Shown here: positions 4,445 to 34,850 of the stretch, piece after piece
How the letters are laid out: every line of letters begins with the position of its first letter
Numbering within the stretch: the first letter of the stretch is position 1
Assembly: GCA_002269645.1 (NCBI GenBank)
Contig: NIVC01000013.1
Span: 1,178,001-1,242,000, forward strand
From: Macrostomum lignano
Taxonomy: Eukaryota
Length of the DNA stretch: 64,000 bases
Direction of reading: 5' to 3'
Position numbers and translations under genes: made by a program
Notes under the pieces: generated by a model
Database searches by the model: none
What the model was told of the DNA's origin: nothing
Seen by the model: only the letters and a program-made list of their open reading frames with translations

Positions 4445-4659
4445 GCAAGGAGCAAAAAGTATTCATAGAAAACAATTAAAAAAGCACCTTTTCTTAAGAA
4501 CCAATTTCTTCTTCAGTTTTATAAATCACCCTTATTCGAGTACAATTGTCACAGACAAAGATGTTTACAATGAATCTCTTTCTCTTTTTCTAAAATTAAC
4601 AAAAAGACAATAAGTTTTCACAAAGATAACAGACATTCCCCCTAAATAGAAAACATCCC

Positions 4660-6441: not shown

Positions 6442-8433
6442 CCAATCCCACACTGTCAAACACTCTAGTCAGCACCAATCCCACACTGTCAAACACTCTC
6501 TAGTCAGCACCAATCCCACACTGTCAAACACTCTCTAGTCAGCACCAATCCCACACTGTCAAACACTCTCTAGTCAGCACCGATCCCACACTGTCAAACA
6601 CTCTCTAGTCAGCACCGATCCCACACTGTCAAACACTCTCTAGTCAGCACCAATCCCACACTGTCAAACACTCTCTAGTCAGCACCAATCCCACACTGTC
6701 AAACACTCTCTAGTCAGCATCAATCCCACACTGTCAAACACTCTCTAGTCAGCACCAATCCCACACTGTCAAACACTCTCTAGTCAGCACCGATCCCACA
6801 CTGTCAAACACTCTCTAGTCAGCACCAATCCCACACTGTCAAACACTCTCTAGTCAGCACCAATCCCACACTGTCAAACACTCTCTAGTCAGCACCAATC
6901 CCACACTGTCAAACACTCTAGTCAGCACCAATCCCACACTGTCAAACACTCTCTAGTCAGCACCAATCCCATACTGTCAAACACTCTAGTCAGCACCAAT
7001 CCCACACTGTCAAACACTCTAGTCAGCACCAATCCCACACTGTCAAACACTCTAGTCAGCACCAATCCCACACTGTCAAACACTCTAGTCAGCACCAATC
7101 CCACACTGTCAAACACTCTAGTCAGCACCAATCCAACACTGTCAAACACTCTCTAGTCAGCACCAATCCCACACTGTCAAACACTATCTAGTCAGCATCA
7201 ATCCCACACTGTCAAACACTCTAATCAGTATCGATCCCATACTGTCAAACACTCTAGTCAGCCTCAATCCCGCACTGTCAAACACTCTCTAGTCAGCATC
7301 AATCCCACACTGTCAAACACTCTAATCAGTATCGATCCCATACTGTCAAACACTCTCTAGTCAGCACCAATCCCACACTGTCAAACACTCTCTAGTCAGC
7401 ACCAATCCCACACTGTCAAACACTCTAGTCAGCACCAATCCCACACTGTCAAACACTCTCTAGTCAGCACCAATCCCACACTGTCAAACACTCTCTAGTC
7501 AGCACCAATCCCACACTGCCAAACACTCTCTAGTCAGCACCAATCCCATACTGTCAAACACTCTAGTCAGCACCAATCCCACACTGTCAAACACTCTAGT
7601 CAGCATCAATCCCACACTGTCAAACACTCTAGTCAGCACCAATCCCACACTGTCAAACACTCTCTAGTCAGCACCAATCCCATACTGTCAAACACTCTAG
7701 TCAGCACCAATCCCACACTGTCAAACACTCTAGTCAGCACCAATCCCACACTGTCAAACACTCTAGTCAGCACCAATCCCACACTGTCAAACACTCTAGT
7801 CAGCACCAATCCCACACTGTCAAACACTCTAGTCAGCACCAATCCAACACTGTCAAACACTCTCTAGTCAGCACCAATCCCACACTGTCAAACACTCTAG
7901 TCAGCACCAATTCCACACTGTCAAACACTCTAGTCAGCACCAATCCCACACTGTCAAACACTCTAGTCAGCACCAATCCCACACTGTCAAACACTCTAGT
8001 CAGCACCAATCCCACACTGTCAAACACTCTAGTCAGCACCAATCCCACACTGTCAAACACTCTAGTCAGCACCAATCCCACACTGTCAAACACTCTAGTC
8101 AGCACCAATCCCACACTGTCAAACACTCTAGTCAGCACCAATCCCACACTGTCAAACACTCTCTAGTCAGCACCAATCCCATACTGTCAAACACTCTCTA
8201 GTCAGCACCAATCCCACACTGTCAAACACTCTAGTCAGCACCAATCCCACACTGTCAAACACTCTAGTCAGCACCAATCCTACACTGTCAAACACTCTAG
8301 TCAGCACCAATCCCACACTGTCAAACACTCTAGTCAGCACCAATCCCACACTGTCAAACACTCTAATCAGTATCGATCCCATACTGTCAAACACTCTCTA
8401 GTCAGCACCAATCCCACACTGTCAAACACTCTA
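6442..8433. repeat. Minisatellite, 33/35-bp unit (ccaatcccacactgtcaaacactct[ct]agtcagca)
   Basis: Tandem array of about 58 units that ends in the kinase stop codon. Confidence 0.97.
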
Positions 8434-9359
8434 GCAAGCCAGAAACCGGTGCCTCAGCAGCTCGCTCGCACTCGGTCTATCTCCGGGCTGCTGCTGAACG
8501 CACACCCGATAGAAGTCCCGCAGCGAGCTGGCCACAGATCCCGGCAGCTGCGGCATGGGCTTGCTGGAGATGAGTATCGCCAAGCGGAACATCTGCCTGA
8601 CGTCGGAATTCGGCGGACTGCCTGTGGCCATCTCGAACGCAGTGCAGCCGACAGCCCATACGTCGGTCTTGGCGGTGTACACGACAGCGTCCTCAGCTGT
8701 GAGGATCTCTGGCGCCATGAAGTGCGGAGTGCCGCACTGCTGGTGAGTCACCATCTGCGACGTGGCGATCTCGCGAGCGAATCCGAAGTCGATCAGCTTC
8801 ACCGTGCCAGAGTAGGTCAGCATCAGGTTGGACGACTTGATGTCGCGGTGGAGAATCGGGCGGGCCAGACCGTGCAAGTGGGACAGCGCTGAGCACGTCT
8901 GCAAACGTAGATTGAGACTGGCTCGAATGAGTTGCAATCAAGCATGAGCAATGCATCGGAATCGGCCTAATCAGCACAGAAACGCACCTGTCCGATGAAC
9001 TTGCGAATTCCGTCCTCATCGATGGGAGTTCCCCGACGCGTCATCAGTTGCTCGATGGTACAGCCGGAGAGCAGCTCGCAGAAGATGAAGTACTTGCCGG
9101 ACTGCTCCTCGGCTCTGAGGAAACGAACTACGTTTCTGTGTCGGACGGTGCTGAGCAGCTCCAGAGCTCGCCTCTCCATCTCGAAAATTTTCCGCTGCGC
9201 CTCCGGAGTCATCTGCATCAGCGGCTTGATGACCTTGACGGCTACAAACTGGTGCCGGTCAGTGATGGCCTGGAACACCTTGCCAAATCCGCCGGATCCG
9301 ATGACCTTCTTCTTGTTGTCCTCGAGAACAAAGTCCCAGGTGGTAAAACTGGCGTCCAT
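8431..9359 (-). CDS. Ser/Thr protein kinase, STE11/MAP3K-like, two exons (N-terminus uncertain)
   Basis: Exons 9359(ATG)-8988 and 8898-8431 with a phase-0 GT-AG intron. Motifs GSGGFGKV, VAVK, HRDIKSSN, DFG, GTPHFMAPE and DVWAVGC are all present. The frame is open upstream to 9476 with a Pro-rich stretch but no ATG. Confidence 0.9.
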
Positions 9360-11377: not shown

Positions 11378-12850
11378 GTTATTATTATTAAGAAACCAGA
11401 GAGGAGACCCCTTACGCGCACGTGTTTGCAGAACAGGCAGGAGGGGCAGGCAGCAGCAGCCTGAGGGGTCAGTGCAAGCGCCTGCAAGTCAGCAATGAGG
11501 CAGTCCGTCAGAGTGGCAGTGCAGGTCTGGCCTCGGCGCAGTTGCTCGGTCGGCCAGGGTCAGAGGGACGGGCGCACCACGGTCCAGGGTCCGTAGGCAG
11601 TGGCCCAGCAGCATCTGGGGCGGAGCTCCAAGGCGGGTCATCAGAGCGGCAGGCGCTCCGGGTAATGCACGCCCACCGTGTAGCGCAGCAACGATCGGTA
11701 GAGCGCGTCCAGCGCTCGCTCTCGCATCTCCATGCCGTACAGGAGGATCGGCTCTACGGACGCGTGTAACAGGCGCACCATCAGATTGTCTTTGACAGCT
11801 GAATTAAAGACGTTCCTGAAGAGGTGCTTGGCGCGCCACAGGCCTGAGTCCTCCTGTCGGAGACAATGGCATAGCGGTTCATCACCAGGGTGCCTGGCAC
11901 ACCGCGATGCCGTCTCCATTGGCAGCGTGCGAGTTGGGGCGGTATTTGTGCCCACGTGCAGCGCCTCCGTCTTGCGAGCATTCACCAGCAGCCCAACACG
12001 GGGCGCCCACGTCGCGGCGCCCACGTCGCAGAGCCTTGTGAGAGCGCGCTATGTAGCAGCCGGAAAGTGCCTTGCGGAACTCGACAAAGACGATTGACAC
12101 GGAGCGCTGGCGGGTCTTGCAGGCCTCTATGACAGAGCGGATGGTGGTAACCTGCTCGATGGTGGACCTGTCAAGGCGGAAGCCCGCTTTGGAAGCTCAG
12201 CAGCAGCGGGTTAGGGCTGGGAAGGAGGCGGTTGCCAGAATCACGTTTAGCGGCTTCGGCGTTGTGCATTATAGCACGATGTCCCGCTGGCTTTCCAGGC
12301 TGATGGAGACAATCTTGGAGGTGCGCCATTGCTGAGGAGCTGAGGCGGTCTCGTTGCCTCCAAAGCTGCAGTGCTTGTTCAGCAGTCTGGTGGGGATTGG
12401 GGTGAGCTCAGGCAGCTTCAGGATCCCTTGGTGCGATGGCGTCCATCCCAGCGGCGGCATCAGCTTGCAGTACTCAGTGCTCAGCCAACCTCGCCTGCAG
12501 TGATGGATGAAACCGGTGTTGAAGGCGCCTGGCTGGGCTGAAGCAAAGTCTGGGATGGGCAGAAGAGGCGCAGTTGGAGCGGGCGCGTTGAGAACCTCGT
12601 GGGCCAGCTTTCTGCAGGCTTCGTGGAATCAGAATCAGTGCCGCGGGGGCCCTCAAGGCAGCACTATGGCGGCTGGCGGCTGTCGTTAGTGGCGAATTTG
12701 ATTTTGCTCACAGCCTCTTCGCAAAAGACTTCAGTCCGCTGAGCGTGGATGCGCTACAGCTCGTCCCTGGAAGCACTGGCCTTGGTCGCTGTCATGGCTG
12801 CCTTGCCTGGGAGATGATGACATCGCGGTCCCACGTCTGTGAGCTATCCC
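11378..12850 (-). mobile_element. Decayed, internally deleted RTE-like non-LTR retrotransposon
   Basis: Minus-strand RT fragments GFRLDRSTIEQV...IVFVEFRKA, LLVNARKTE, EPILLYGME and LLGHCLR, with frameshifts. (TAA)n 3' tail at about 11378-11391. Confidence 0.85.
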
Positions 12851-15824: not shown

Positions 15825-18800
15825 GCTGACACTGAAAAGCAGGAGCACAGTCGCAGCAGTGCTGGCAGCAGCGGCGGTGGCCGCAGCGCAGACACCAAAG
15901 ATAGAAAGCAGTCAAAGTCACGAAGGTCAAGGTCAAGGTCATCCTCGGGTTCAAGCTCGTCGGATCGTCGTGGGCGGCATTATCGACACGATCGACGTTC
16001 TAATCGGGATCGTGAGCGTCGAAGGAGGGACAGTCGCGAGCGACGGCCTGCGCGACGGCGAGAGCGAGATCGTTCGCGTTCGTCCTCTGATTCTTCTAGA
16101 GAGCGCCGGTCTGGTGTGAGTATTGGACTCAAGTCTTCGATCCCATTTCATAGATACCATCCCCAATCAGCTCTCCTTTTGCAGCCCGAACTCCTAATAC
16201 CAAAATTTATTTCCAAATATTGGTATATCCTTTGATCCTCAAATGCATTCCTGATCGATCCCTGATCCTCAAAATGTATTAGCGATCCCCAAATCGACCC
16301 CCCTGATCCTCAAAATGTATTTAAGATCCCCAAATCGATTCCTGATCCTCAAAATGCATTCGTGATCCCCAAATCGATCCCGGATCCTCAAAATGCATTC
16401 GTGATCCCCAATCGATCCCTGATCCTCAAAATGCATTCGTGATCTCCAAATCGATCCCTGATCCTCAAAATGCATTCGTAATCCTCAAGGCGGTCTCTTC
16501 TGATCCTCAAAATGCATTCCTGATCCTAAAAGAAGTCCCCGTAATCCCCAATGCACGTAGACTGATCCCAGTTCTATCCCAACTCTCTTCGAGTGTAATT
16601 AGTTCTCACTCGCCATTACCACCAACAGTACACCCGATCAAAGCAAGACTCGACCAGCTCTGCAGCGAAGCCTGTTCAAGCTAAACAGCCTCAGCCTTCA
16701 GCATCTGCCGCAGTCCCAGCCGCCAACCCGGCCGCCGCTCTGGCTGCCGCTAAGCTAGCCGCCGCCGCCGCAGCCGCCCAGATCAATGCTGTCGCCGCTG
16801 TACAAGATGAGAAACGCCGGCAGCTCTGGTCTCGTGCTGGCGAGAATCGCCAACGCACCGCGCCAGTCTGGGCCCAACAAGCCGGAGCCGTTGATGACGG
16901 CTACGGTAGGGAAGAGAAATTCCGGAAACTGATGGGTCTTGGCGGCGGCGCTGCCGGTGCGGCCGGCGCTTCTTCCGGCGGGTCTGATGGAGAAGGTGAA
17001 AATGCATGCCTCACCTGTCTTCTCCTCTGTCTACCTCTCTGTCTCCCCCTCTCCTGTCTTCCTTATTTATCTGCTCCTCTGTCTCCCCTCACCCCCACTC
17101 TGTCCCCCTCACCCCCACTCTGTCCCCCTCACCCCCACTCTGTCTCCCCTCAGCCCCACTCTGTCCCCCTCACCCCCACTCTGTCCCCCCTCACCCCCAC
17201 TCTGTCCCCCCTCACCCCCACTCTGTCCCCCCTCACCCCCACTCTGTCTCCCCTCAGCCCCACTCTGTCTCCCCTCAGCCCCACTCTGTCTCCCCTCACC
17301 CCCACTCTGTCTCCCCTCACCCCACTCTGTCCCCCTCACCCCCACTCTGTCCCCCCTCACCCCCACTCTGTCTCCCCTCAGCCCCACTCTGTCTCCCCTC
17401 ACCCCCACTCTGTCCCCCTCACCCCCACTCTGTCTCCCCTCAGCCCCACTCTGTCTCCCCTCACCCCCACTCTGTCTCCCCTCACCCCACTCTGTCCCCC
17501 CTCACCCCCACTCTGTCCCCCCTCACCCCCACTCTGTCTCCCCTCAGCCCCACTCTGTCTCCCCTCACCACCACTCTGTCCCCCCTCACCCCCACTCTGT
17601 CCCCCCTCACCCCCACTCTGTCTCCCCTCACCCCCACTCTGTCTCCCCTCACCCCCACTCTGTCCCCCTCACCCCCACTCTGTCCCCCCTCACCCCCACT
17701 CTGTCTCCCCTCACCCCCACTCTGTCTCCCCTCACCCTCACTCTGTCTCCCCTCACACCACTCTGTCTCCCCTCACCCCACTCTGTCTCCCCTCACCCTC
17801 ACTCTGTCTCCCCTCACCCCACTCTGTCTCCCCTCACCCCCACTGTCTCCCCTCACCCCCACTCTGTCTCCCCTCACCCCCACTCTGTCTCCCCTCACCC
17901 CCACTCTGTCTCCCCTCACCCTCACTCTGTCTCCCCTCACCCCACTCTGTCCCCCCTCACCCCACTCTGTCTCCCCTCACCCTCACTCTGTCTCCCCTCA
18001 CCCTCACTCTGTCTCCCCTCACCCTCACTCTGTCTCCCCTCACCCTCACTCTGTCTCCCCTCACCCCCACTGTCTCCCCTCACCCCACTGTCTCCCCTCA
18101 CCCCACTCTGTCTCCCCTCACCCACTGTCTCCCCTCACCCTCACTCTGTCCCCCCTCACCCCACTCTGTCTCCCCTCACCCTCACTCTGTCTCCCCTCAC
18201 CCTCACTCTGTCTCCCCTCACCCCACTCTGTCTCCCCTCACCCTCACTCTGTCTCCCCTCACCCCACTCTGTCCCCCCTCACCCCACTCTGTCTCCCCTC
18301 ACCCTCACTCTGTCTCCCCTCACCCTCACTCTGTCTCCCCTCACCCTCACTCTGTCTCCCCTCACCCCCACTGTCTTCCCTCACCCCACTGTCTCCCCTC
18401 ACCCCACTCTGTCTCCCCTCACCCACTGTCTCCCCTCACCCTCACTCTGTCCCCCCTCACCCCACTCTGTCTCCCCTCACCCTCACTCTGTCTCCCCTCA
18501 CCCTCACTCTGTCTCCCCTCACCCTCACTCTGTCTCCCCTCACCCTCACTCTGTCTCCCCTCACCCCACTGTCTCCCCTCACCCCACTGTCTCCCCTCAC
18601 CCCCACTGTCTCCCCTCACCCCACTGTCTCCCCTCACCCCACTCTGTCTCCCCTCACCCCACTCTGTCTCCCCTCACCCTCTGTCTCCCCTCACCCTCAC
18701 TCTGTCTCCCCTCACCCTCACTCTGTCTCCCCTCACCCTCACTCTGTCTCCCCTCACCCTCGCTATCTCTGACTCCACTATCTCATAACCTTCTCTACCT

Positions 18801-19075: not shown

Positions 19076-19589
19076 TTCAAATTTGTTACATAATGAGATG
19101 CTCAGGTGTCAGAGACAGTGCTCAGGTGTCAATGTGGAATACGATCTGAAATTGCTTAGGAAAAGTATTTTATTCTCCTTAAGTTTGTTGACTGAATTAA
19201 GTAAATTTTTACCGTTTTTCAGTTTTAAAGTCGACTAGTGCTTTGCATTTTGTATATACATTACTAAGTTGCTGTTTAAAACAATCTGTTTAAAAGAAAT
19301 TTAATCCATGTCTGTTGTTTCTCGATCATTAAGTTTATGGTGTTACATTCTATCTTATTCAGCTCATTGCATTAAAATATTTAATTAATTATGACTAAAA
19401 CTAAAACGAAGATTATTGCTAGAGTCACCAACCCCACGTATTAATAAATGGGTGTAACATCGGACTTTGTCTTGTGTATTATTATTTGGAAATTTTGTAC
19501 CTATTATGGACCTAAGACTTATTATCCCTATTGTTCAAATCTGCTAGTCATAGAGGCAGGCTTAAGCTATCTCTCATATCTGCCATTCC

Positions 19590-21070
19590 AGTCCCTGACT
19601 CATCTACCAATCCCATCCTTGACCCATCTGTCATTCCCACCCTTGACCTATCTGCCATTCCCACACGACCCATCTGCCATTCCCATGCTTGACCCATCTG
19701 CCATTCCCATGCTTGACCCATCTGCGATTCCCACACTTGACCCATCTGCCATTCCCATGCTTGACCCATCTGCCATTCCCACCCTTGACCCATTTCCCAT
19801 TCCCACCCTTGACCCATTTCCCATTCCCACCCTTGACCCATCTGCCATTCCCAACCTTGACCCATTTCCCATTCCCACCCTTGACCCATTTCCCATTCCA
19901 ACCCTTGACCTATCTGCCATTCCCATGCTTGACCCATCTGCCATTCCCGTCCTTGACCCATCTGCTAGTCCTATGCTTGACCCATCTGCCATTCCCATGC
20001 TTGACCCATCTGCCATTTTTATGCTTGACCCATCTGCCATTCCCATGCTTGACCCATCTGCCCCTCCCATGCTTGACCCATCTGCCATTTTTATGCTTGA
20101 CCCATCTGCCATTCCCATGCTTGACCCATCTGTCATTCCCTTGCTTGACCCATCTGTCATTCCCATGCTTGACCCATCTGCCATTCCCACACTTGACCCA
20201 TCTGCCATTCCCATGCTTGACCCATCTGCCCCTCCCATGCTTGACCCATCTGCCCCTCCCATGCTTGACCCATCTGCCATTTTTATGCTTGACCCATCTG
20301 CCATTCCCATGCTTGACCCATCTGTCATTCCCATGCTTGACCCATCTGTCATTCCCATGCTTGACCCATCTGCCATTCCCACAATTGACCCATCTGCCAT
20401 TCCCATGCTTGACCCATCTGCCATTTTATGCTTGACCCATCTACCATTCCCATGCTTGACCCATCTGCCCCTCCCATGCTTGACCCATCTGCCATTTTTA
20501 TGCTTGACCCATCTGCCATTCCCATGCTTGACCCATCTGCCATTCCCATGCTTGACCCATCTGCCCCTCCCATGCTTGACCCATCTGCCATTTTTATGCT
20601 TGACCCATCTGCCATTCCCATGCTTGACCCATCTGTCATTCCCTTGCTTGACCCATCTGTCATTCCCATGCTTGACCCATCTGCCATTCCCACAATTGAC
20701 CCATCTGCCATTCCCATGCTTGACCCATCTGCCATTTTATGCTTGACCCATCTGCCATTCCCATGCTTGACCCATCTGCCCCTCCCATGCTTGACCCATC
20801 TGCCATTCCCATGCTTGACCCATCTGTCATTCCCTTGCTTGACCCATCTGCCATTCCCATGCTTGACCCATCTGTCATTCCCTTGCTTGACCCATCTGTC
20901 ATTCCCATGCTTGACCCATCTGCCATTCCCACACTTGACCCATCTGCCATTCCCATGCTTGACCCATCTGCCATTTAATGCTTGACCCATCTGCCATTCC
21001 CATGCTTGACCCATCTGCCCCTCCCATGCTTGACCCATCTGCCATTCCCATGCTTGAACCATCTCCAGTT
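19590..21070. repeat. Minisatellite, 24-bp unit (cttgacccatctgccattcccatg)
   Basis: Tandem array between RSRC2 and RTF2, with occasional 23-bp variants. Confidence 0.97.
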
Positions 21071-21281: not shown

Positions 21282-23967
21282 ATGGGCGGAGACGGAGGCA
21301 GCATACCGAAACGAATCGAACTGGTGCGCAGTCGCCAGAAACCCGAACAGGTGGCCAAGGAGGCTGAATTGGCCGCCAGATGGAGACACTGCCAGCTGTC
21401 TCAGGAGCTGCTCAACCGGCCAATAGTAGCCTGTCATCTTGGTCGGATGTACAACAAGACTGCCGCTCTGGAGTTCCTGCTCGACAGAGAGAAATACGGC
21501 ACTAGCGGCGCGTTCGAGCATATCCGCTCGTTGCGGGACTTGCGCGAGCTTAAACTGGCTGATAATCCGGAGGGACAGGTAATTCTGCGAGGTTTTTTAA
21601 TGAAAGGATATGAAGATTAATGAGGGGGGTTGTAGCCTAGTGTTTAGAGCGTCGGACTCGCGACTTGAAGGTCGGGGGTTCGATTCCCGATCCCACTGGA
21701 GACAGTTGTAGCCTAGTGTTTAGAGCGTCGGACTCGCGACTTAAGGTCGGGGGTTCGATTCCCGATCCCACTGGAGACAGTTGTAGCCTAGTGTTTAGAG
21801 CGTCGGACTCGCGACTTAAGGTCGGGGGTTCGATTCCCGATCCCACTGGAGACAGTTGTAGCCTAGTGTTTAGAGCGTCGGACTCGCAACTTAAGGTCGG
21901 GGGTTCGATTCCCGATCCCACTGGAGACAGTTGTAGCCTAGTGTTTAGAGCGTCGGACTCGCGACTTAAGGTCGGGGGTTCGATTCCCGATCCCACTGGA
22001 GACAGTTGTAGCCTAGTGTTTAGAGCTTAGGACTCACGACTTAAGGTCGGGGGTTCGATTCCCGATCCCACTGGAGACAGTTGTAGCCTAGTGTTTAGAG
22101 CTTCGGACTCACGACTTGAAGGTCGGGGGTTCGATTCCCGATCCAACTGGAGACAGTTGTAGCCTAGTGTTTAGAGCTTCGGACTCGCGACTTGAAGGTC
22201 GGGGGTTCGATTCCCTATCCCACTGGAACAATGTGTGTCCTTGAGCATGACACTTAACTCTGCATTGCTTCAGTTCACCCAGCTGTAAAATGGGTGCCAG
22301 CATTAGCTGGGGTAATTGAGGGTGTGTGTGGCGTAATATAGGTTGCAAGTCTTCCCATCGGGGCAAGTGTAATCAATTATTATTATTATGAAGATCACCA
22401 AGGCTGTGAGATTTTAAGATTCAGAGCGTTTTGCGGTTTAAATTTCACCCTCAAGAATGTCTAGAATTATGGGCTTTTAAGGGGAAACTGGGAATTATAG
22501 GATTTCAAGGGAATCAGAGAATTATGGGCTTCTAAGGGGAATCCAAGAATTATGGGATTTTAAGGGAAACAGACCATTATGGGCTTTTAAGGGGAATCTG
22601 AGAATTATGGGATTTTATGGGGAATCTGAGAACTATGGGATTTTATGGGGAATCTGAGAACTATCGGATTTTATGGGGAATCTGAGAACTATGGGATTTT
22701 ATGGGGAATCTGAGAATTATGGGGTTTTAAGGGGAATCTGAGAATTATAGGATTTTATGGGGAATCTGAGAACTATGGGATTTTATGGGGAATCTGAGAA
22801 CTATGGGATTTTATGGGGAATCTGAGAACTATGGGATTTTAAGGGGAATCTGAGAATTATGGGGTTTTATGGGGAATCTGAGAATTAAGGGATTTTATGG
22901 GGAATCTGAGAATTATGGGGTTTTATGGGGAATCTGAGAATTATGGGGTTTTATGGGGAATCTGAGAATTATGGGGTTTTTTTGGGGAATCTGAGAATTA
23001 TGGGGTTTTTTTGGGGAATCTGAGAATTATGGGGTTTTATGGGGAATCTGAGAATTATGGGGTTTTATGGGGAATCTGAGAACTATGGGGTTTTATGGGG
23101 AATCTGAGAATTATGGGATTTTATGGGGAATCTGAGAACTATGGGATTTTATGGGGAATCTGAGAATTATGGGATTTTATGGGGAATCTGAGAACTATGG
23201 GATTTTATGGGGAATCTGAGAATTATGGGATTTTATGGGGAATCTGAGAACTATGGGATTTATGGGGAATCTGAGAACTATGGGATTTTATGGGGAATCT
23301 GAGAATTATGGGATTTTAAGGGGAATCTGACATACTTGATTCGCAAGTTTAAAAAAGGAGTAACATTCTAAAATTCGCCTCCCCGCCTCCCAACAACCAG
23401 GAGAAAGCTGCTTCATCATCCGCCGCAGGCGCTGGTGCTGCCGCTGCTTCGGCCGCCAGCCCGTTCGCCTGCCCCCTGTCCGGCGTGGAGATGAACGGCC
23501 GGTTCCGTTTCGTGTTCCCCTGGTCCTGCGGCTGCGCGCTGGCCGAGAAAGCCGTTGACCAGCTGCTGAAGTCCGCACCAAATAGGCAGTCGCTGGCCTG
23601 CCCGTCCTGTCAGCAGCCTGACGCCATGTCAGATTTGATTGTTCTCAATCCTGCCACGGACGCTGAAGTTGCCGCCGCTAGCGAGGCTATGGTTGCTAGG
23701 AAACGCAAACTCAGGCAGGAATCAAAAAGTAATAAATCGTCCAAGTCTGCCGCTGCTGCTCCCGCTGCTGCAAAGCGAAAGCAGCAACCAGCAGAATCTG
23801 CTTCTGCTTCATCAACCGGTTCAAAGATTGCTCGTCCAAGTGGCAGCAGCATTCAAAACAACCCGAAGGCTTCGGCGGCACTGAAGTCCCTGTTAACCAG
23901 TTCGAAGGAGGCCAAGGCGCAGGATAAGGCGCACTGGGTCACCTTTAATCCTGGCTATTTTCGTTGA
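21282..23967 (+). CDS. RTF2: Replication termination factor 2 (Rtf2 RING-like family)
   Basis: Exons 21282-21578 and 23401-23967, phase 0. MGGDGGSIPKRIELV, LGRMYNK, CPLSGVEMNGRFRF, CGC, CPSC and the C-terminal AHWVTFNP are diagnostic. Confidence 0.93.
21625..22387 (+). mobile_element. tRNA-derived CORE-type SINE with 8 tandem 75/76-bp heads, in the RTF2 intron
   Basis: Each unit has an A-box-like tagcctagtg and a B box ggttcgattcc. The last unit continues into gtgtccttgagcatgacacttaactc...cagctgtaaaatggg (MIR/CORE-like) and an (ATT)n tail. tatgaagat occurs near both ends (21609 and 22387). Confidence 0.85.
22480..23330. repeat. Intronic minisatellite, 28-bp unit (ggggaatctgagaattatgggattttat)
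   Basis: Tandem array in the RTF2 intron. Confidence 0.96.
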
Positions 23968-24769
23968 ATCAACTGGAAACTGAATTCTGCTTTTAATAAT
24001 AACAAAAAAACGCTAACTATCCTACTGATTAATTGGTGTAAGTAGAATCTACCAAATTTTACTAATATTATTCTCAAAAAAAGTAAAAAATACTTTTGTA
24101 AATAAAATCCCGCTTTAAGTTACGCTTCGTTGTGACTATTGTGTTGTAAAATAAATAACTCGAAGCTATGAAATAAACCATACTTTGCGGCGTTAAATAA
24201 AAATTAAAAATTGGTAATTAACCATTAAAAGCTAATAGAAGAAGTGTTATACTTTCTAGAATTCTTAGAAAGATAAGGATTTCCTATTTTTCTTCTGGTG
24301 GAAACAAAAAACACTTATCTCTCTCTCCTTCTGGCTCTTCCGCAAGGTCAAAGAAACATTTTTCTCCATCATATTCTCTCCAACCTTCTACTGCACCCAC
24401 AAGCGGCGGCCCTGGATACTAACTCACCACTGTTCAACTTCTTGGATTCTTGCTTGCAGTCAGTCGATTGCACTAATTCTGCTAGCCCACTTGATAGGCA
24501 GCGAGTCTGCCACTGCCCTGCGTTTCCTTCTTCTGTGTTCTTCTGTTCCTTTTTTACCCTTCTGTTTCTGGATTATATTCTTTTTTCCTACCACCGCGGT
24601 AGGAAGCACCACTTATCTATGCATATCTATCCATATTTACGTATTTACTTGTGTTATTTTTATGTCTATAATACAATAAAGTACATTGTAGGAATTTCAT
24701 TTTTTCAACGGTACACAAATTTGAAACTGCAGACTTTCTAAACGACTGTTTTCTAGGGAAAGATCAAAA

Positions 24770-25800
24770 GAGGGAGTGGCAGTAGAGAAGGAGAGGACAG
24801 AGAAAGAGAGAGAGCAAAGAAGGAGAGGGTGGAGTCAGAGAGAGGGAGAGACAACAGGGAAGGAGAGGGTGGAGTAAGAGAGAGGGAGAGACAACATGGA
24901 AGGAGAGGGTGGAGTCAGAGAGAGGGAGAGACAACAGGGAAGGAGAGGGTGGAGTCAGAGAGAGGGAGAGACAACATGGAAGGAGAGGGTGGAGTCAGAG
25001 AGAGGGAGAGACAACAGGGAAGGAGAGGGTGGAGTCAGAGAGAGGGAGAGACAACATGGAAGGAGAGGGTGGAGTCAGAGAGAGGGAGAGACAACAGGGA
25101 AGGAGAGGGTGGAGTAAGAGAGAGGGAGAGACAACATGGAAGGAGAGGGTGGAGTCAGAGAGAGGGAGAGACAACAGGGAAGGAGAGGGTAGAGTCAGAG
25201 AGAGGGAGAAACAACAGGGAAGGAGAGGGTGGAGTCAGAGAGAGAGTGTGTACACGGAGAGGGTAGAGTCAGGGAAGGAGAGGGTGGAGTCAACAGGGAA
25301 GGAGAGGGTGGAGTCAACAGGGAAGGAGAGGGTGGAGTCAGAGAGAGGGAGAGACAACAGGGAAGGAGAGGGTAGAGTCAACAGAAGACAACAGGGAAGG
25401 AGAGGGTAGAGTCAACAGAAGACAACAGGGAAGGAGAGGGTAGAGTCAACAGAAGACAACAGGGAAGGAGAGGGTAGAGTCAGAGTCGGAGAGACAGCAA
25501 GGAAGGAGAGGGTGGAGTCAGAGAGAGAGTGTGTACACGGAGAGGGTAGAGTCAGGGAAGGAGAGGGTGGAGTCAAAGAGTCGGAGAGACAGCAGGAAAG
25601 GAGAGGGTGGAGTCAGAGACGGTAGAGAAGGAGAGGGTAGAGTCAGAGAGAGAGAGTCTGTACACGGAGAGGGTAGAGTCAGGGAAGGAGAGGGTGGAGT
25701 CAGAGACAGAAAGAGACAGTAGAGAATTGGAGAGGGTAGAGTCAGAGAGAGAGAGAGAGAGTCTGTACATGGAGAGGGTAGTCAGTGGGAGAGACAGTAG
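24770..25800. repeat. Purine-rich minisatellite, 40-bp unit (gaaggagagggtggagtcagagagagggagagacaacagg)
   Basis: Tandem array between RTF2 and the sulfotransferase, more degenerate towards the 3' side. Confidence 0.93.
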
Positions 25801-25966
25801 AGACTGAGCAGAGAAGGTAGAGTGCCGCTCTTGTGCCCGAGCTGGTGCATAAATATAGCTAAAAGCTGCTAAGATAGATAAGATAAAGTCAGCCCAGTTG
25901 TTCAACAGGTTAAAAATCTGTAAACCTTTGGTTTCTAACGGTCGTTAGCTCGCTCACTGCGAAGGC

Positions 25967-28279
25967 ATGTCTCTATATTGGCGGGACTGGCCGGTGCCTC
26001 TACACTCGTCGGCTGAAGTGCTGGCTGAACTTGCTGAAAATTTCCAATTCTACGATGACGACATTTTGGTGAACACTTTTCCCAAATGCGGAACCACCCT
26101 GGTGCAAGAGATCGTGTCCTGTCTGGTGTTGGGACCGGAGCGGACTCGAACTACGGACCTTAAATTGAGATCGCCATTTATAGATTTGAATTTGCCGCCG
26201 GAACTGCCGGTTCCAAGGCCGATTGATGGGGCTAAGAAGCTGGACAGGCCTCGGGTGTTGAAGACGCATCTGCCGCCTGCCTTTCATATGCGGCATCTGG
26301 TGAGAATAATGCCGCGGCTTCATTCGGGATCGAAGGGCGGGGCAGTTCGTTTAAATGGTAAAGTAAATGGTAGTGTCAAGCCATTATTGTAGGCATAGTC
26401 CAATTTAAATGCATACTAGTAGCTATCCTATATCTTTCTAAATAGTTAAATCCATATACTAAAACTTGTCTTTAAAAAGCTACAATCAGTTTTTAAGCCA
26501 AGGTCTAGCTTTTTAAGGCTAAGAGTATCTGTATGCAACAAAAAGGAATAACAGAGTTGAAAATGTTTTTTCTCCTATCCCCGCAGTGTATTTTTCCCAG
26601 GAAATTTGCCTTCTAAAAATTACACTTACAGTTTTACGACAGTGGTCCTTAAAAGTACAACATGTAAAAGTGCACCAGGACATAAAAGTACATCAATCTG
26701 TAAAAGTACGTCAATTTAAAAGTACATCAATCGGTAAAAGTACATCAATGTAAAAGTACAATAATGTTTAAAGTACAATAAAAGTACATCGGTGACCGAT
26801 GCCGCTCTGATTGATGTAGGTGGCGCCATCTGGTCCGCGCAACATCATAGTGATGCGCAATCCAAAAGACGCCATTGTGTCAACCTATCATCACATGACA
26901 TCTGCCAGGCGCGACGAGCTGTCGGGTGTGCCGCAGGAGTTCTCCCAGTTCTGGCGGATGATGCTAGGAATCCCCGGCGGTGCCGAGAATACCGAAATTG
27001 TTGTGCATGATTTTTTCGACTTCAATCTGTCCTGGTGGTCGATGCGAAGGCATTCCAGGGTGCTTATTTTGTTCTACGAAGATCTGATTGTGGACAAGAC
27101 TGCTGAGGTGAAATATCTGACTAACTATAGTTATGGTCCTGCAAAGTTTTTTAAGAGTCTTTTTAGAAGAATTGTTGATGCTGATGAGAATTTTCCCTAA
27201 AAATTGCCCCTAAGAATCGCCCCTAAAACGTACCTTAAAAATTGTCTTACAAATTGCCCTTAAAATTAGTTAACCTTAAAGATGGCCCTAAGAAACACTT
27301 CTAAAAATCGCCCCTAAGAATCGCCTCTAAAAATCGCCCCTAAGAATTGCCTCTAAAAATCGCCTCTGAGAATCGCCTCTAAAAATCGCCTCTGAGAATC
27401 GCCTCTAAAAATCACTCCTAAGAATGGCCTCTAAAAATCGCCCCTAAGAATCGCCTCTAAAAATCACCCCTAGGAATCACCTCTAAAAATCGCCTCTGAG
27501 AATCGCCTCTAAAAATCACTCCTAAGAATTACCACTAAAAATCGCCTCTAAAAATCGCCTCTAAAAATCGCCTCTAAAAATCGCCTCTAAAAATCACCCC
27601 TAAGAATCACCACTAAAAATCGCCTCTGAGAATCGCCTCTAAAAATCACCCCTAAGAATCACCACTAAAAATCGTCTCTAAAAATCACCCCTAAGAATCA
27701 CCACTAAAAATCGCCTCTGAGAATCGCCTCTAAAAATCACTTCTAAGAATTACCACTAAAAATCGCCTCTAAAAATCGCCTCTAAAAATCGCCTCTAAAA
27801 ATCGCCTCTAAAAATCACCCCTAAGAATCACCACTAAAAATCGCCTCTGAGAATCGCCTCTAAAAATCGCCTCTAAAAATCACCCCTAAGAATCACCACT
27901 AAAAATCGCCACTAAAAATCGCCTCTAAAAATCGCCTCTAAAAATCGCCTCTAAAAATCGCCACTAAAAATCGCCTCTAAAAATCGCCTACTACAACGAA
28001 ACGCAGGTGAAGCGGATGGCCGAATTCCTATCCACCCCGCTGACCGAAGCCCTGCTGCACTCGGTGCTACAGCAGACCAGCTTCTCCGCAATGCAGTCCA
28101 ACCCGATGGTGAACATCACGCTGACCGATCCCGAGCGCTGGCGTCCCGGCTCAAATTTTATTCGTCGCGGTGAAATCGGCGACTGGAAACGGCATTTCTC
28201 CGCTGAGGATGCCGAGCTGGTTGACGGAATTATTGAGGAGAAATTGGCCGGCTCGGGTTTGCAATTTCGCTACGAGTGA
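25967..28279 (+). CDS. Cytosolic sulfotransferase (SULT1-like), 297 aa
   Basis: Exons 25967-26299, 26820-27107 and 28007-28279, all phase 0. 5'-PSB motif TFPKCGTT, KTHLP, RNPKDAIVS, FYEDL and 3' PAPS motif RRGEIGDWK. Confidence 0.93.
27190..27990. repeat. Intronic minisatellite of 13-bp units (aaaaatcgcctct / aagaatcaccact)
   Basis: Tandem array running almost to the exon 3 acceptor. Confidence 0.95.
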
Positions 28280-28409
28280 ATGTGAACTCAATCTAATCTT
28301 TTAGGACTGCTTGATGGGCCGTTAAAAGTGCACATTGTGCTTTAATTATTAATGAGTCATCTATGAGTAGATGTATGTAACAGGTATTGTAATGTCTATG
28401 CATAGGAGT

Positions 28410-28930
28410 GTCTTGGGTGCAGTGAGACTGTCTGGGTGTGGGACTGTCTTGGGTGCAGTGAGACTGTCTGGGTGTGGGACTGTCTTGGGTGCAGTGAGAC
28501 TGTCTGGGTGTGGGACTTTATGGGTGTGAGACTGTCTGGGTGTGGGACTTTATGAGTGTGAGACTGTCTAGGTGTGGGACTGTCTTAGGTGTGGGACTGT
28601 CTTGGGTGCAGTGAGACTGTCTGGGTGTGGGACTGTATGGGTGTGGGGACTGTCTAGGTGTGAGACTGTCTAGTTGTGGGACTGTATGGGTATGGATTGT
28701 CTGGGTGTGGGACGGTATATGGTGTGGGACTGTCTGGGTGTGGGACTTTATGGGTGTGAGACTGTCTAGTTGTGGGACTGTATGGGTATGGGATTGTCTG
28801 GGTGTGGGACGGTATATGGTGTGGGACTGTCTGGGTGTGGGACTTTATGGGTGTGAGACTGTCTAGTTGTGGGACTGTATGGGTATGGGATTGTCTGGGT
28901 GTGGGACGGTATATGGTGTGGGATTGTCTG
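28410..28930. repeat. GT-rich minisatellite (gtgtgggactgtct core, about 16-17 bp)
   Basis: Visible tandem array downstream of the sulfotransferase. Confidence 0.92.
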
Positions 28931-29689
28931 GATATTGGACTGTATTTGTTATGATTAATTATTTTTCGATTTAGTGAATTCAAGATCGCTACAAAAGTTG
29001 CCATGTTTTCGTAAACTGCGTTTTTTTTATTTTTTTGCTATCATTTACTAAAAAATCTAATTTTAAATTATCTAATTTTACAATAATATTGCAAGAATAT
29101 ATTAATTATCAAACACGTAGGCTCGCTTTTTGTCAGCGTATTTGTTTTACGCTTTTAAAATTTTCGAAAGTTGAAAAGGAAAAGAGACAGTAGAATCCGA
29201 AAGAGGGAGAGGCAGTAGGGAAGGAGAGGGTACGAGCTCGTGGATTCAGATATTCCTAAAATGATAGCTATTGATAAATTACACTAGCCAAGCATCCAGT
29301 CAGGAACTGTGGTTTTCTTTCGTATTTGTGCATTTTCAACACACTGTGTGCCCTGTGTGCATTGCAGTATGTGCGAAAAATAAATTTTCTAATGCAACCC
29401 AAAGACGAATAGCTAAGATTTGCAATACGAACGGAATTATGGTGTTTGTTAAATCCGCTTCCCTCGTCCCTCTACAGTACTTTCTAGAATTTCGCGCGCC
29501 ATCAAGTAAACTTTGGGGAACTGCGATGACTGGCTTCCCTAACAGAACATGCGGATGCCCAATGATGGGGCAAGGCGATCTTCTATCTAGGTTAGGAAGA
29601 GTAAGCATTCTTGCTTTAATCCAGGTTGCTTCTGGAAAGATAAATTTTATTTTCTAGGAAGCATCGCATTTACATTTACTAGTTTCTGA

Positions 29690-30150
29690 AGTGTCTATTA
29701 TTTGTGGTGTGTCTATGGTTTGTTGAGTGTCTATGGTTTGTGGTGTGTCTATCGTTTGTGGAGTGTCTATCGTTTGTGGTGTGTCTATCGTTTGTGGAGT
29801 GTCTATGGTTTGTGGTGTGTCTATGGTTTGTGGAGTGTCTATGGTTTGTGGTGTGTCTATCGTTTGTGGAGTGTCTATGGTTTGTGAAGTGTCTATGGTT
29901 TGTGGTGTGTCTATGGTTTGTGAAGTGTCTATGGTTTCTGAGGTGTCTATGGTTTGTGGTGTGTCTATCGTTTGTGGAGTGTCTATGGTTTGTGGTGTGT
30001 CTATGGTTTGTGGTGTGTCTATGGTTTGTGGAGTGTCTATGGTTTGTGGTGTGTCTATGGTTTGTGGAGTGTCTATGGTTTGTGGTGTGTCTATGGTTTG
30101 TGGAGTGTCTATGATTTGTGAAGTATCTATCGTTCGTGGTGTGTCTATGG
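29690..30150. repeat. Minisatellite, 18-bp unit (ggtttgtggtgtgtctat)
   Basis: Visible tandem array. Confidence 0.95.
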
Positions 30151-32004: not shown

Positions 32005-34850
32005 GGCCACAAAACACAACAGCCCCATCCAAAACACAACAGCAACCTCCAAAACACAACAGCCCCCTCCAAAACACAACAGCCCCCTCCAAAACACAAC
32101 AGCCCCCTCAAAAACATAACAGCCCCCTCCAAGACACAACAGCCCCCTCCAAAACACAACAGCCCCCTCCAAAACACAACAGCCCCCTCCAAAACACAAC
32201 AGCCCCCTCCAAAACACAACAGCACCCTCCAAAACACAACAGCCCCATCCAAAACACAACAGCCCCCTCCAAAACACAACAGCCCCCTCCAAAACACAAC
32301 AGCCCCATCCAAAACACAACAGCCCCCTCCAAAACACAACAGCCCCCTCCAAAACACAACAGCACCTCCAAAACACAACAGCCCCCTCCAAAACACAACA
32401 GCACTTCGAAAACACAACAGCCCCCCCCCAAACACAACAGCCCCCTCCAAAACACAACAGCACCTCCAAAACACAACAGCCCCCTCCAAAACACAACAGC
32501 ACCTCCAAAACACAACAACCCCCCCCAAACACAACAGCCCCCTCCAAAACACAACAGCCCCATCCAAAACACAACAGCCCCCTCCAAAACACAACAGCCC
32601 CCTCCAAAACACAACAGCACTTCGAAAACACAACAGCCCCCCCCAAACACAACAGCCCCCTCCAAAACACAACAGCCCCCTCCAAAACACAACAGCCCCC
32701 TCCAAAACACAACAGCCCCATCCAAAACACAACAGCACCCCCAAAACACAACAGCCCCTCCAAAACACAACAGCCCCCTCCAAAACACAACAGCCCCCTC
32801 CAAAACACAACAGCACCCCCAAAACACAACAGCCCCCTCCAAAACACAACAGCCCCCTCCAAAACACAACAGCCCCATCCAAAACACAACAGCGCCCTCC
32901 AAAACACAACAGCCCCCTCCAAAACACAACAGCCCCCTCCAAAACACAACAGCACCCCCAAAACACAACAGCCCCCTCCAAAACACAACAGCCCCCTCCA
33001 AAACACAACAGCCCCCTCCAAAACACAACAGCCCCCCCCTCCAAACACAACAGCCCCCCAAAAACACAACAGCCCCCTCCAAAACACAACAGCCCCATCC
33101 AAAACACAACAGCGCCCTCCAAAACACAACAGCACCCTCCAAAACACAACAGCACCTCCAAAACACAACAGCCCCCTCCAAAACACAACAGCCCCATCCA
33201 AAACACAACAGCCCCCTCCAAAACACAACAGCCCCCTCCAAAACACAACAGCACTTCGAAAACACAACAGCCCCCCCCAAACACAACAGCCCCCTCCAAA
33301 ACACAACAGCCCCATCCAAAACACAACAGCGCCCTCCAAAACACAACAGCCCCCTCCAAAACACAACAGCCCCATCCAAAACACAACAGCGCCCTCCAAA
33401 ACACAACAGCCCCCTCCAAAACACAACAGCCCCATCCAAAACACAACAGCCCCCTCCAAAACACAACAGCCCCATCCAAAACACAACAGCCCCCTCCAAA
33501 ACACAACAGCCCCCTCCAAAACACAACAGCACTTCGAAAACACAACAGCCCCCCCCAAACACAACAGCCCCCTCCAAAACACAACAGCACCTCCAAAACA
33601 CAACAGCCCCCTCCAAAACACAACAGCACCTCCAAAACACAACAGCCCCCCCCAAACACAACAGCCCCCTCCAAAACACAACAGCCCCATCCAAAACACA
33701 ACAGCGCCCTCCAAAACACAACAGCCCCCTCCAAAACACAACAGCCCCCTCCAAAACACAACAGCCCCCTCCAAAACACAACAGCACCCCCAAAACACAA
33801 CAGCCCCCTCCAAAACACAACAGCCCCCTCCAAAACACAACAGCCCCCTCCAAAACACAACAGCCCCCCCCCCTCCAAACACAACAGCCCCCCAAAAACA
33901 CAACAGCCCCCTCCAAAACACAACAGCCCCATCCAAAACACAACAGCGCCCTCCAAAACACAACAGCACCCTCCAAAACACAACAGCACCTCCAAAACAC
34001 AACAGCCCCCTCCAAAAAACAACAGCCCCATCCAAAACACAACAGCCCCCTCCAAAACAGAACAGCCCCCTCCAAAACACAACAGCCCCTCCAAAACACA
34101 ACAGCCCCCTCCAAAACACAACAGCCCCCTCCAAAACACAACAGCCCCCTCCAAAACACAACAGCACCCCCAAAACACAACAGCCCCCTCCAAAACACAA
34201 CAGCCCCTTCCAAAACACAACAGCCCCCTCCAAAACACAACAGCCCCCTCCAAAACACAACAGCCCCCCCCTCCAAACACAACAGCCCCCCCAAAAACAC
34301 AACAGCCCCCTCCAAAACACAACAGCCCCATCCAAAACACAACAGCGCCCTCCAAAACACAACAGCACCCTCCAAAACACAACAGCACCTCCAAAACACA
34401 ACAGCCCTCACCCAAACACAACAACCCCCACCCAAACACAACAGCAACCTCCAAAACACAACAGCGCCCTCCAAAACACAATAGCAACCTCCAAAACACA
34501 ACAGCCCCCTCCAAAACACAACAGCCCCCTCCAAAACACAACAGCACCCCCAAAACACAACAGCCCCCTCCAAAACACAACAGCCCCATCCAAAGCACAA
34601 CAGCGCCCTCCAAAACACAACAGCCCCCTCCAAAACACAACAGCCCCCCCAAACACAACAGCCCCCTCCAAAACACAACAGCCCCCTCCAAAACACAACA
34701 GCCCCCCCCAAACACAACAGCCCCCCCCCCAAACACAACAGCCCCCTCCAAAACACAACAGCCCCCCCCCCAAAACACAACAGCACCTCCAAAACACAAT
34801 AGCGCCCCCCAAAACACGATAGAGCCGCCAAAAACACGATAGCCCCACTA
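32005..34850. repeat. Minisatellite, 20-bp unit (ccaaaacacaacagccccct)
   Basis: Array of about 2.8 kb with 19-22 bp variants. Source of the 800-940-aa ORFs. Confidence 0.98.

Follow-up and report, generated by a model that had tools for sequence, protein, structure and literature searches.

A tRNA-derived SINE in the RTF2 intron of Macrostomum lignano whose head has probably become a minisatellite in place

Introduction

How did a single SINE in an intron of the flatworm Macrostomum lignano come to carry eight tRNA-like heads in a row, and does this array serve the gene in which it lies? The locus is part of a 64-kb stretch of scaffold NIVC01000013.1, hereafter called the window, and it was compared with two further copies of the same locus on separately assembled scaffolds (L001 and L003; the window is L002). 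Tandem repeats account for 13.1% of the M. lignano genome, which has been described as an unusually high fraction, and all SINEs together amount to 0.39% of the assembly Mlig_3_7 (PMC5730564). The array varies in copy number like the minisatellites that surround it; most likely, it thus arose as an unremarkable side effect of a genome prone to repeats and was not built as a device with multiple promoters.

Results

One SINE body with eight heads in the only intron of RTF2

The host gene of the element is RTF2 (Pfam Rtf2, E = 3.9e-69). Based on the splice between the exons and the Pfam match, exon 1 (21282-21578, + strand) extends from the ATG to a CAG/GT donor site, and exon 2 (23401-23967, +) runs up to and including the stop codon. 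The spliced product of 287 amino acids is the same as the NCBI protein PAA94234.1 (P0013), with no differences. The sole intron of the gene, which is 1822 bp long and bounded by GT and AG (21579-23400, +; from the sequence and the gene call), consists to about 90% of the SINE (769 bp) and a 28-bp minisatellite (868 bp). Moreover, the reading frame of RTF2 is uninterrupted in all three locus copies, regardless of the number of head units.

The sequence of the whole SINE (21618-22386, +) reads, from 5' to 3', TAATGA, a G-run, eight heads, a body and a tail. The element lies between two target-site duplications (TSDs) TATGAAGAT, which match each other exactly over 9 bp (21609-21617 and 22387-22395, both +), enclose the entire element including the array and are also found in L001 and L003. 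The tail is (ATT)n (22376-22386, +; read from the sequence) and continues into the right TSD. The only body (22232-22375), for which a body probe matches once in the window, is composed of a CORE-like central domain (22234-22298, +), recognised by a MIR alignment and the likeness to a metagenomic element described below, and of a 3' part (22299-22375, +; delimited on the sequence), which is presumed to be LINE-related. The element, which lies in sense orientation in the RTF2 intron, belongs to the tRNA-derived SINEs, as shown by a tRNA-related 5' head with A and B boxes, a simple-repeat tail, (ATT)n, and flanking 9-bp TSDs, and its body is CORE-like.

The array itself (21629-22231, +; Tandem Repeats Finder and unit list) consists of eight tandem head units, each with an A-box-like motif TAGCCTAGTGT and a B box GGTTCGATTCC. 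Tandem Repeats Finder placed it at 21629-22227, with a period of 75, 7.9 copies, 97% matches and a score of 1108. In the phase of GTTGTAGCC, the units start at positions 21629, 21705, 21780, 21855, 21930, 22005, 22080 and 22156 and are 76, 75, 75, 75, 75, 75, 76 and 76 bp long, respectively. A 23-nt probe covering the B box to the unit end matched eight times, compared with 0.00 matches expected from shuffled sequences. The A-box-like motif, which is present in all eight units, agrees with the consensus TRGCNNAGTGG at 10 of 11 positions; the B box, likewise present in 8/8 units, is a perfect match (11/11) to the consensus GGTTCGANNCC, and the distance from A-box start to B-box start is 43-44 bp. 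The initial annotation had described eight tandem units of 75/76 bp with A-box- and B-box-like motifs, one CORE-like body followed by an (ATT)n tail, and a sense orientation within the RTF2 intron; all of this was confirmed by the unit list and the probe matches, the box consensus comparison, the single body match together with the MIR alignment and the tail, and the gene structure with its identity to the deposited protein.

The junctions between the units are informative about how the array arose. All seven internal junctions are alike, with CCCACTGGAGACA passing directly into GTTGTAGCC, and they lack the GGGG that opens unit 1. In units 2-8, the tRNA-like sequence thus begins only with its base 5, and GACA takes the place of the GGGG of the acceptor stem; as opposed to a true multimer, not every monomer is a complete head unit. 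The absence of the four opening tRNA-like bases from the junction indicates that the duplication involved an internal stretch of DNA, and neither an entire head nor an entire transcript.

tRNA likeness, folds and terminators

Unit 1 with its 5' G-run (21626-21695, +) scored 30.9 bits with the Rfam tRNA model RF00005, for which the gathering score is 29, and it is the sole unit that reaches this threshold. Units 7 and 8 remained below it (23.5 and 19.4 bits, respectively), units 2-6 gave no match at E <= 10, and no tRNA gene was predicted by ARAGORN. In the minimum-free-energy fold of unit 1, GGGGUUG pairs with CGAUCCC, which closes a 7-bp acceptor stem, whereas the predicted folds of units 2-8 lack a fully closed acceptor stem of the kind found in substrates of RNase P/Z. 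The earlier proposal that only unit 1 has kept the acceptor stem is therefore borne out by both scores and folds.

A scan for T-runs detected no T4 run, i.e. no Pol III terminator, between 21599 and 22411; the first T4 run 3' of the heads, and hence the nearest possible terminator, is located at 22412-22415 (+). It follows that discrete 75-nt Pol III products cannot arise by termination. Taken together with the sub-threshold scores and open acceptor stems of units 2-8, the lack of terminators between the units makes discrete 75-nt products unlikely. Since the 769-bp element contains no T4 terminator, a single Pol III transcript starting from head 1 would be possible.

CORE affinity and search for relatives

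The head and core of the element aligned with a working version of the MIR consensus with a local score of 69, while shuffled sequences reached 17 +/- 1.9 and at most 22. Furthermore, the CORE domain is identical at 55 of 65 positions to that of another SINE-like element, unrelated and with a single head, which lies on a metagenome contig (L004), although 24 of these 55 identical positions were fixed in advance by the search pattern. For comparison, CORE membership has been accepted at 65-70% identity (PMC4758252). The central domain that defines CORE-SINEs is thus recognisable, given the alignment to this version of the MIR consensus and the domain in L004. A Nin-DC or MetaSINE body had been the first suspicion, which was dropped because the MIR alignment favours CORE.

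No further copy of the SINE was detected in the 64-kb window, L001 or L003 by low-stringency blastn with the monomer, and a pattern spanning the B box to the junction had 0 matches in the metagenome scan. A full-text literature search with the CORE string returned mammalian primer sequences only. An 85-aa minus-strand ORF over the body and head yielded no candidate in a protein search, and exact look-ups of a 121-aa ORF inside the array and of the older gene models P0003 and P0004 gave no record. What may be said about the normal number of heads in this SINE family would therefore come from a single locus, seen in the window and in two locus copies.

The window also contains a degraded LINE fragment at about 11.4-12.65 kb, which ends in (TAA)n and for which a protein search retrieved four short metagenome contigs and nothing else. 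It was considered as a partner of the SINE and rejected, because it ends in (TAA)n and not (ATT)n and has no sequence in common with the element.

Variation of the array among three locus copies

L001, L002 and L003 have the insertion, its flanks, the TSDs and the terminal unit in common, and the SINE sits at the same site in each. The number of head units is six in L001 and eight in both L002 and L003 (5.9, 7.9 and 7.9 copies, respectively). The array of L003 is identical to that of the window, whereas L001 shows another order of variants, namely ref-like, ref, two T.A.A-del units, one T..A-like unit and the terminal unit. Conversely, four successive units of the window belong to a recombinant type that combines ref bases with the 1-bp deletion; L001 has no such run. 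Copy number and variant order have thus shifted in place. As a second scaffold carries the identical eight units and a third carries six, the count of eight is no one-off assembly slip.

Divergence among the units is 2.8-5.6%, compared with 0.3-1.8% in the unique flanks of the locus copies (1.2-1.8% for L001). The higher divergence of the units indicates that the first duplications predate the split of the copies, and that turnover went on afterwards. SNPs that tell the six-unit and eight-unit RTF2 copies apart lie at 23462 and in the flanks. L002 and L003 differ by about 0.3% overall and by nothing over the 769-bp element. A polishing artefact or gene conversion behind the identity of their arrays was considered and dropped, as zero differences in 769 bp are unremarkable at such a low overall divergence.

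Among the 14 distinct units, 11 columns are variable, all of them outside the 22 columns that make up the two boxes. Each of the 22 units in the three copies has a perfect B box together with a near-consensus A box. The naive probability of such box-free variation is P = 0.011; calculated by hand with CpG columns kept apart from the others, it is about 0.04. On the aligned units, this pattern could hint at constraint on the A and B boxes.

A surrounding rich in minisatellites

Tandem repeats with a period of at least 7 cover 35.7% of the window in 38 arrays. One of these is the 28-bp minisatellite in the same intron (22463-23330, +; 31 copies according to the repeat coordinates), the sequence of which is unrelated to the SINE. 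All four neighbouring minisatellites that were compared across the locus copies vary in copy number. For instance, L001, L002 and L003 have 36, 83 and 127 copies in a 21-bp array, 41, 62 and 38 copies in a 24-bp array, and 38, 31 and 31 copies in the 28-bp array, respectively. Between L002 and L003, the head array is constant while the 21-bp and 24-bp arrays differ. Where units are long and the array is short, such constancy is to be expected, but it also fits some stability. The head array agrees with the published definition of SINE-derived tandem repeats, as portions of a SINE are arranged head to tail and the end unit leads into the remaining SINE (PMC10702118). Moreover, the number and the variants of the units vary at a fixed locus.

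Discussion

Origin of the array

In our judgement, the array probably goes back to one SINE insertion, and slippage or unequal exchange later made a minisatellite of its head; a selected function is probably absent. A single tRNA-derived CORE-type SINE would have entered the intron of RTF2 by retrotransposition, 39 bp 3' of the donor site, before the three assembled locus copies of M. lignano diverged. After the insertion, a 76-bp internal DNA segment, which starts at the fifth base of the tRNA-like sequence and ends 8 bp beyond it, would have been duplicated in tandem. The resulting pair of units may then have been expanded and contracted by replication slippage or unequal exchange to the present 8, 8 and 6 units, presumably by the same process that filled the region with minisatellites. 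The array would be a passive part of the RTF2 pre-mRNA that is spliced out with the intron, and if the heads do have Pol III or TFIIIC activity, this would be incidental. It is the mechanism of slippage or unequal exchange and the lack of a selected function that we infer here.

The strongest competing explanation, which we nevertheless consider unlikely, is a SINE family or subfamily that is multimeric by nature, in which a multi-head master was transcribed from its first head and retrotransposed as a whole, with only fine-tuning in place. It would account for the TSDs that surround the whole element including the array, and for the presence of at least six units in all three locus copies, the divergence of which exceeds that of the flanks; Pol III could also produce a single transcript that starts from head 1, and multimeric SINEs are known (PMC4758252; PMC10702118). 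However, the junction lacking the first four tRNA-like bases does not resemble the joining of whole SINE or tRNA units, the copy number and variant order demonstrably vary in place, and the one relative found with the same central domain, on L004, is single-headed. An error of the assembly, by which a single-headed SINE would appear as multi-headed, is far less probable still. Mlig_3_7 was assembled with Canu from early PacBio reads and polished with short reads (PMC5730564), and it is redundant and partly chimeric (PMC10733133), so that exact unit counts in arrays can err. However, the array was found in three of three separately assembled scaffolds, its units bear distinct variants in a defined order, L001 with its diverged flanks differs in both number and order, and an array of 600 bp is much shorter than PacBio reads. 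The chance that a cluster of tRNA genes or pseudogenes merely lies beside a SINE-like sequence is negligible. Unit 1 barely exceeds the Rfam tRNA threshold, whereas the other seven units stay under it and ARAGORN recognised none; their T stem is shortened, and none of the predicted folds is a cloverleaf. The recognised tRNAs, cloverleaf folds, spacers and terminators expected of such a cluster were not found: the units are contiguous, and the last one passes directly into the CORE-type body and the tail inside one pair of TSDs.

A function of the array is very unlikely in our view. The initial annotation had proposed a multimerised TFIIIC platform or a source of RNAs of about 75 nt that could affect RTF2, an idea that gained no positive support from the sequence, while several results speak for neutral dynamics of tandem repeats. 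TFIIIC-bound B boxes and tRNA-type SINEs are able to act as boundaries. The eight B boxes might recruit TFIIIC or Pol III and act as an insulator or interfere with Pol II in RTF2, or the array might be a source of small RNAs. Similarly, there is a slim chance that the heads are kept as a dense landing pad for TFIIIC or Pol III, i.e. as a SINE-born insulator or interference element of variable copy number, the invariance of the boxes being its footprint in the sequence. The consensus B box known from TFIIIC insulators and ETC sites is indeed found as GGTTCGATTCC in 8/8 units, and the intact boxes of all 22 units, free of variable columns, agree with such a role. However, the variation is mostly located in a CpG-rich stretch, and intact boxes are largely expected in young units that are 97% alike. 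The number of units is not constant across the locus copies, discrete 75-nt products are unlikely in view of the terminators, the gathering score and the folds, and the region turns any sequence into minisatellites. With a period of 75 bp, the TFIIIB site would overlap the B-box end of the preceding unit, and neighbouring units would thus hardly both hold full complexes. Moreover, the RTF2 frame is intact in all copies irrespective of the unit number.

The head turned into a minisatellite would be a clean and small case of a piece of a transposable element becoming a minisatellite while the element ends and TSDs are still intact, with three genome copies recording stages of expansion and contraction. 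CORE-SINEs outside vertebrates have been listed for amphioxus, sea squirt, sea urchin, octopus, gastropods and bivalves, and no flatworm is named in this host list from 2016 (PMC4758252); both CORE-type SINEs and SINE-derived tandem arrays now appear to be extended to a flatworm. For annotators, it is of relevance that long ORFs and tRNA-like matches in introns of M. lignano can be repeat artefacts. If the B-box array did bind TFIIIC and influence RTF2, the locus would be of greater importance, but nothing here points to that.

Comparison with known systems

With tDNA and B-box (TFIIIC/ETC) insulators and SINE boundary elements, the array has only the motif in common, namely consensus B boxes, of which there are eight within 600 bp; the number of boxes is not conserved across the locus copies. 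The element as a whole follows the plan of CORE-SINEs such as MIR, with a tRNA-related head, a CORE central domain, a 3' region and a simple-repeat tail. Several Pol III-type heads in a row are also found in dimeric, trimeric and multimeric SINEs, such as the colugo t-SINEs, Alu and the jerboa Dip/B1 elements (PMC4758252; PMC10702118), and the latter form multimers of up to eight (PMC10702118). However, multimeric SINEs consist of complete units that are retrotransposed as multimers or built by repeated insertion, whereas the units described here lack the 5' end of the head, have one common junction and shift in number at a fixed locus.

The array also resembles minisatellites and satellites that originate from transposable elements, in which an internal piece of the element reportedly seeds an array that then undergoes unequal exchange (PMC3389668, PMC9659126). 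The limpet satellite PcH-Sat, which derives from a Nin-SINE, is likewise an array seeded by a transposable element; it is reported to be a true high-copy satellite, in contrast to the eight units in an intron of M. lignano (PMC11121367). A satellite proper would have several loci, long arrays and a link to heterochromatin or subtelomeres. Squamate reptiles offer a comparison with the SINE-derived satellites sSat1-3, the units of which may cover the head or tRNA-related part or the box B (Vassetzky, Kosushkin & Ryskov 2023, PMC10702118). Low-copy SINE-derived loci in squamates have 2-8 monomers, and their end unit leads into the rest of the SINE (PMC10702118). As in sSat1-3, the tandem unit in M. 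lignano is a portion of a tRNA-derived SINE and the end unit extends into the remainder of the SINE; moreover, the units within a locus are similar while orthologous loci are variable (PMC10702118). Unlike sSat1-3, the array of M. lignano belongs to a flatworm and is known from one locus in three genome copies, where it lies within the intron of a gene, its unit corresponds almost exactly to the head, and both ends of the SINE and the TSDs are intact.

The multi-headed SINE of the RTF2 intron

The coding sequence of RTF2 is formed by 21282-21578 joined to 23401-23967 across a GT..AG intron. Its 287-aa product matches Pfam Rtf2 (E = 3.9e-69) and has the same sequence as Macrostomum lignano PAA94234.1, and the gene stretch is an exact match to scaffold NIVC01000013.1 of Mlig_3_7. 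The sole intron holds, 39 bp downstream of its donor, a sense-oriented SINE of 769 bp (21618-22386, plus strand), which is bounded by exact 9-bp target-site duplications, TATGAAGAT, at 21609-21617 and 22387-22395. The element contains a tandem array of tRNA-like heads at 21629-22231 (75-bp unit, 7.9 copies, 97% matches), which resolves into eight units of 76, 75, 75, 75, 75, 75, 76 and 76 bp when phased on GTTGTAGCC. A 23-nt probe that starts at the B box and covers the rest of the unit has eight matches in the window, and none are expected in shuffled sequence. Every unit carries the A-box-like motif TAGCCTAGTGT, fitting the consensus TRGCNNAGTGG at 10 of 11 positions, and the B box GGTTCGATTCC, which fits the consensus GGTTCGANNCC perfectly; the two boxes start 43-44 bp apart. 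The last unit is continuous with a body that is single-copy in the window (22232-22375, plus strand) and is directly followed at its 3' end by an (ATT)n tail. With one head instead of eight, the element would measure ~245 bp, which is a normal size for a SINE. The array is confirmed, and the initial annotation was right in describing eight heads with A-box- and B-box-like motifs, one CORE-like body and an (ATT)n tail, in sense orientation within the RTF2 intron.

Together with a 28-bp minisatellite of 31 copies (22463-23330), whose sequence is unrelated to it, the SINE makes up 90% of the 1822-bp intron. The older MetaClust gene model P0002 (307 aa; window 21480-21578 and 23356-23400) splices from a donor within exon 1 to an acceptor 45 bp upstream of that given above; 22 residues are replaced by SNILKFASPPPNNQ, a 5' extension is present and SINE sequence is absent from the model. 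The splice difference is due either to alternative splicing or to faulty annotation. Directly downstream of RTF2 lies a sulfotransferase gene (Pfam Sulfotransfer_1, 25967-28279), the introns of which are likewise filled with minisatellites.

Similarity to tRNAs and CORE-SINEs

Unit 1 with its 5' G-run scores 30.9 bits on the Rfam tRNA model and is the sole unit reaching the gathering score of 29. Unit 7 follows with 23.5 bits and unit 8 with 19.4 bits; the five 75-bp units have no match to this model at E <= 10, and ARAGORN called no tRNA. Units 2-8 have GACA in place of GGGG as the first four acceptor bases. In the predicted minimum-free-energy folds, the full 7-bp acceptor stem is closed by unit 1 only; unit 7, aided by its own substitution, forms a shorter 6-bp terminal stem, and none of the eight folds is a cloverleaf. 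The earlier description, according to which only unit 1 keeps a pairable acceptor stem, is accurate because this unit alone reaches the threshold and closes the 7-bp stem.

The hallmark of a SINE superfamily is that the central domain alone is held in common. Alignment of head and body with the consensus of the mammalian CORE-SINE MIR gave a score of 69 (shuffles: 17 +/- 1.9, maximum 22), which is a lead rather than a database result. A metagenome scan retrieved one eukaryotic contig (MOXG01000745.1), which bears a SINE-like element (~100-250, minus strand) with the same central domain, identical at 55 of 65 positions, of which 24 were fixed by the search pattern. This element has a single head without a tRNA-model match at E <= 1, and its head and 3' end differ from those of the M. 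lignano SINE; it gives independent support for the CORE-like body. Matetovici et al. took 65-70% identity to CORE as sufficient for membership, and no flatworm is named in their list of non-vertebrate CORE-SINE hosts (PMC4758252). The label "CORE-like" stands.

Copies of the locus and minisatellite surroundings

Two further copies of the RTF2 locus, L001 (NIVC01000991.1) and L003 (NIVC01000014.1), were reached in the same assembly through the RTF2 protein cluster; the window itself is L002. In all three, the SINE is inserted at one shared position, its duplications are the same and its array closes with the same terminal unit. Around the gene, ~0.3% of L003 sites differ from the window, and the eight-unit array of L003 is identical to that of the window, whereas L001 has diverged by 1.2-1.8% in the unique flanks and has six units with the variant types in a different order. 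A recombinant unit type with four copies in the window is absent from L001. Since the units differ from each other by 2.8-5.6%, which exceeds the difference between the locus copies, the first duplications predate the separation of these copies, and turnover went on later. The three copies fit the three subgenomes (S, L1, L2) that have been described in M. lignano, where paralog pairs have SNP rates of 1.9-2.4% and long insertions lift the overall divergence to 32-36% (PMC10733133). L003 and the window cease to match ~750 bp downstream of RTF2 (L003 9400-14673 against window 24700-30000), and no sulfotransferase gene was called in L003 beyond this point; the break points either to rearrangement of one copy relative to the other or to a chimeric scaffold.

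Tandem repeats with a period of 7 or more cover 35.7% of the window in 38 arrays (for instance, 4637-5644, 6442-8434, 17077-18759, 19578-21064 and 32010-34817). This share is nearly three times the genome-wide 13.1% of M. lignano, whose repeat load has been called unusually high and includes 0.39% SINEs (PMC5730564). Among arrays lying upstream and downstream of RTF2, copy number varies between L001, L002 and L003 for all four compared: 36, 83 and 127 for a 21-bp array, 41, 62 and 38 for a 24-bp array, 38, 31 and 31 for the 28-bp array, and 5.9, 7.9 and 7.9 for the head array. The head array acts like one further minisatellite.

Several window arrays can be read through without a stop codon, giving ORFs of up to 628 aa that are repeat artefacts. 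The window has a G+C content of 44.7% and a CpG observed/expected ratio of 0.56. It also contains a degraded, frameshifted LINE reverse-transcriptase fragment with a (TAA)n end (~11384-12650, minus strand), which was missed by Pfam and matches four RVT_1-bearing proteins, all on short metagenome contigs. The fragment shares no sequence similarity with the SINE, whose tail motif is a different one.

Putative function and origin of the array

It had been proposed that the array could act on RTF2 as a TFIIIC platform or as a source of ~75-nt small RNAs. The plus strand of 21599-22411 contains no T4 run, so termination cannot yield 75-nt products, and transcription starting at head 1 is predicted to give an RNA of ~800 nt. 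Units 2-8 are also poor tRNA mimics, the unit number varies between locus copies, RTF2 is intact in all three, and at a 75-bp period the upstream TFIIIB site of one unit would probably run into the 3' end of the unit before it. These results count against the proposal, which is unsupported by the sequence. It receives weak support from the unit variants: all 11 columns that vary among 14 distinct units (window 21629-22231 and L001 6342-6795) lie outside the 22 box columns (naive P = 0.011; ~0.04 by hand calculation with CpG and non-CpG columns separated). Seven of the 11 lie at CpG sites, mostly in the anticodon-arm stretch, and several unit differences are CpG-to-TpG or CpG-to-CpA changes. 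Given the clustering of the variation in a CpG-rich region and the non-independence of the units, the invariance is only a hint of possible constraint on the A and B boxes.

Every internal junction joins CCCACTGGAGACA to GTTGTAGCC, and the repeated segment begins at base 5 of the tRNA-like unit and ends 8 bp beyond it. This junction would fit the duplication of an internal segment; it would not arise by joining entire heads or entire transcripts. A single tandem duplication of internal DNA probably created the junction, and unequal exchange or slippage would then have altered the unit number, the exchange being suggested by the variant map. A multi-headed master copy of the SINE is an improbable source, and an assembly artefact is very unlikely given the ordered unit variants on three scaffolds.

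The array is best described as a SINE head turned into a minisatellite within a minisatellite-prone genome. A direct precedent is provided by the SINE-derived satellites of squamates, in which some units span box B or the tRNA portion, and loci of low copy number have 2-8 monomers with the end unit reaching into the SINE (PMC10702118). The M. lignano head array is a fresh example of this known phenomenon and of modest interest.
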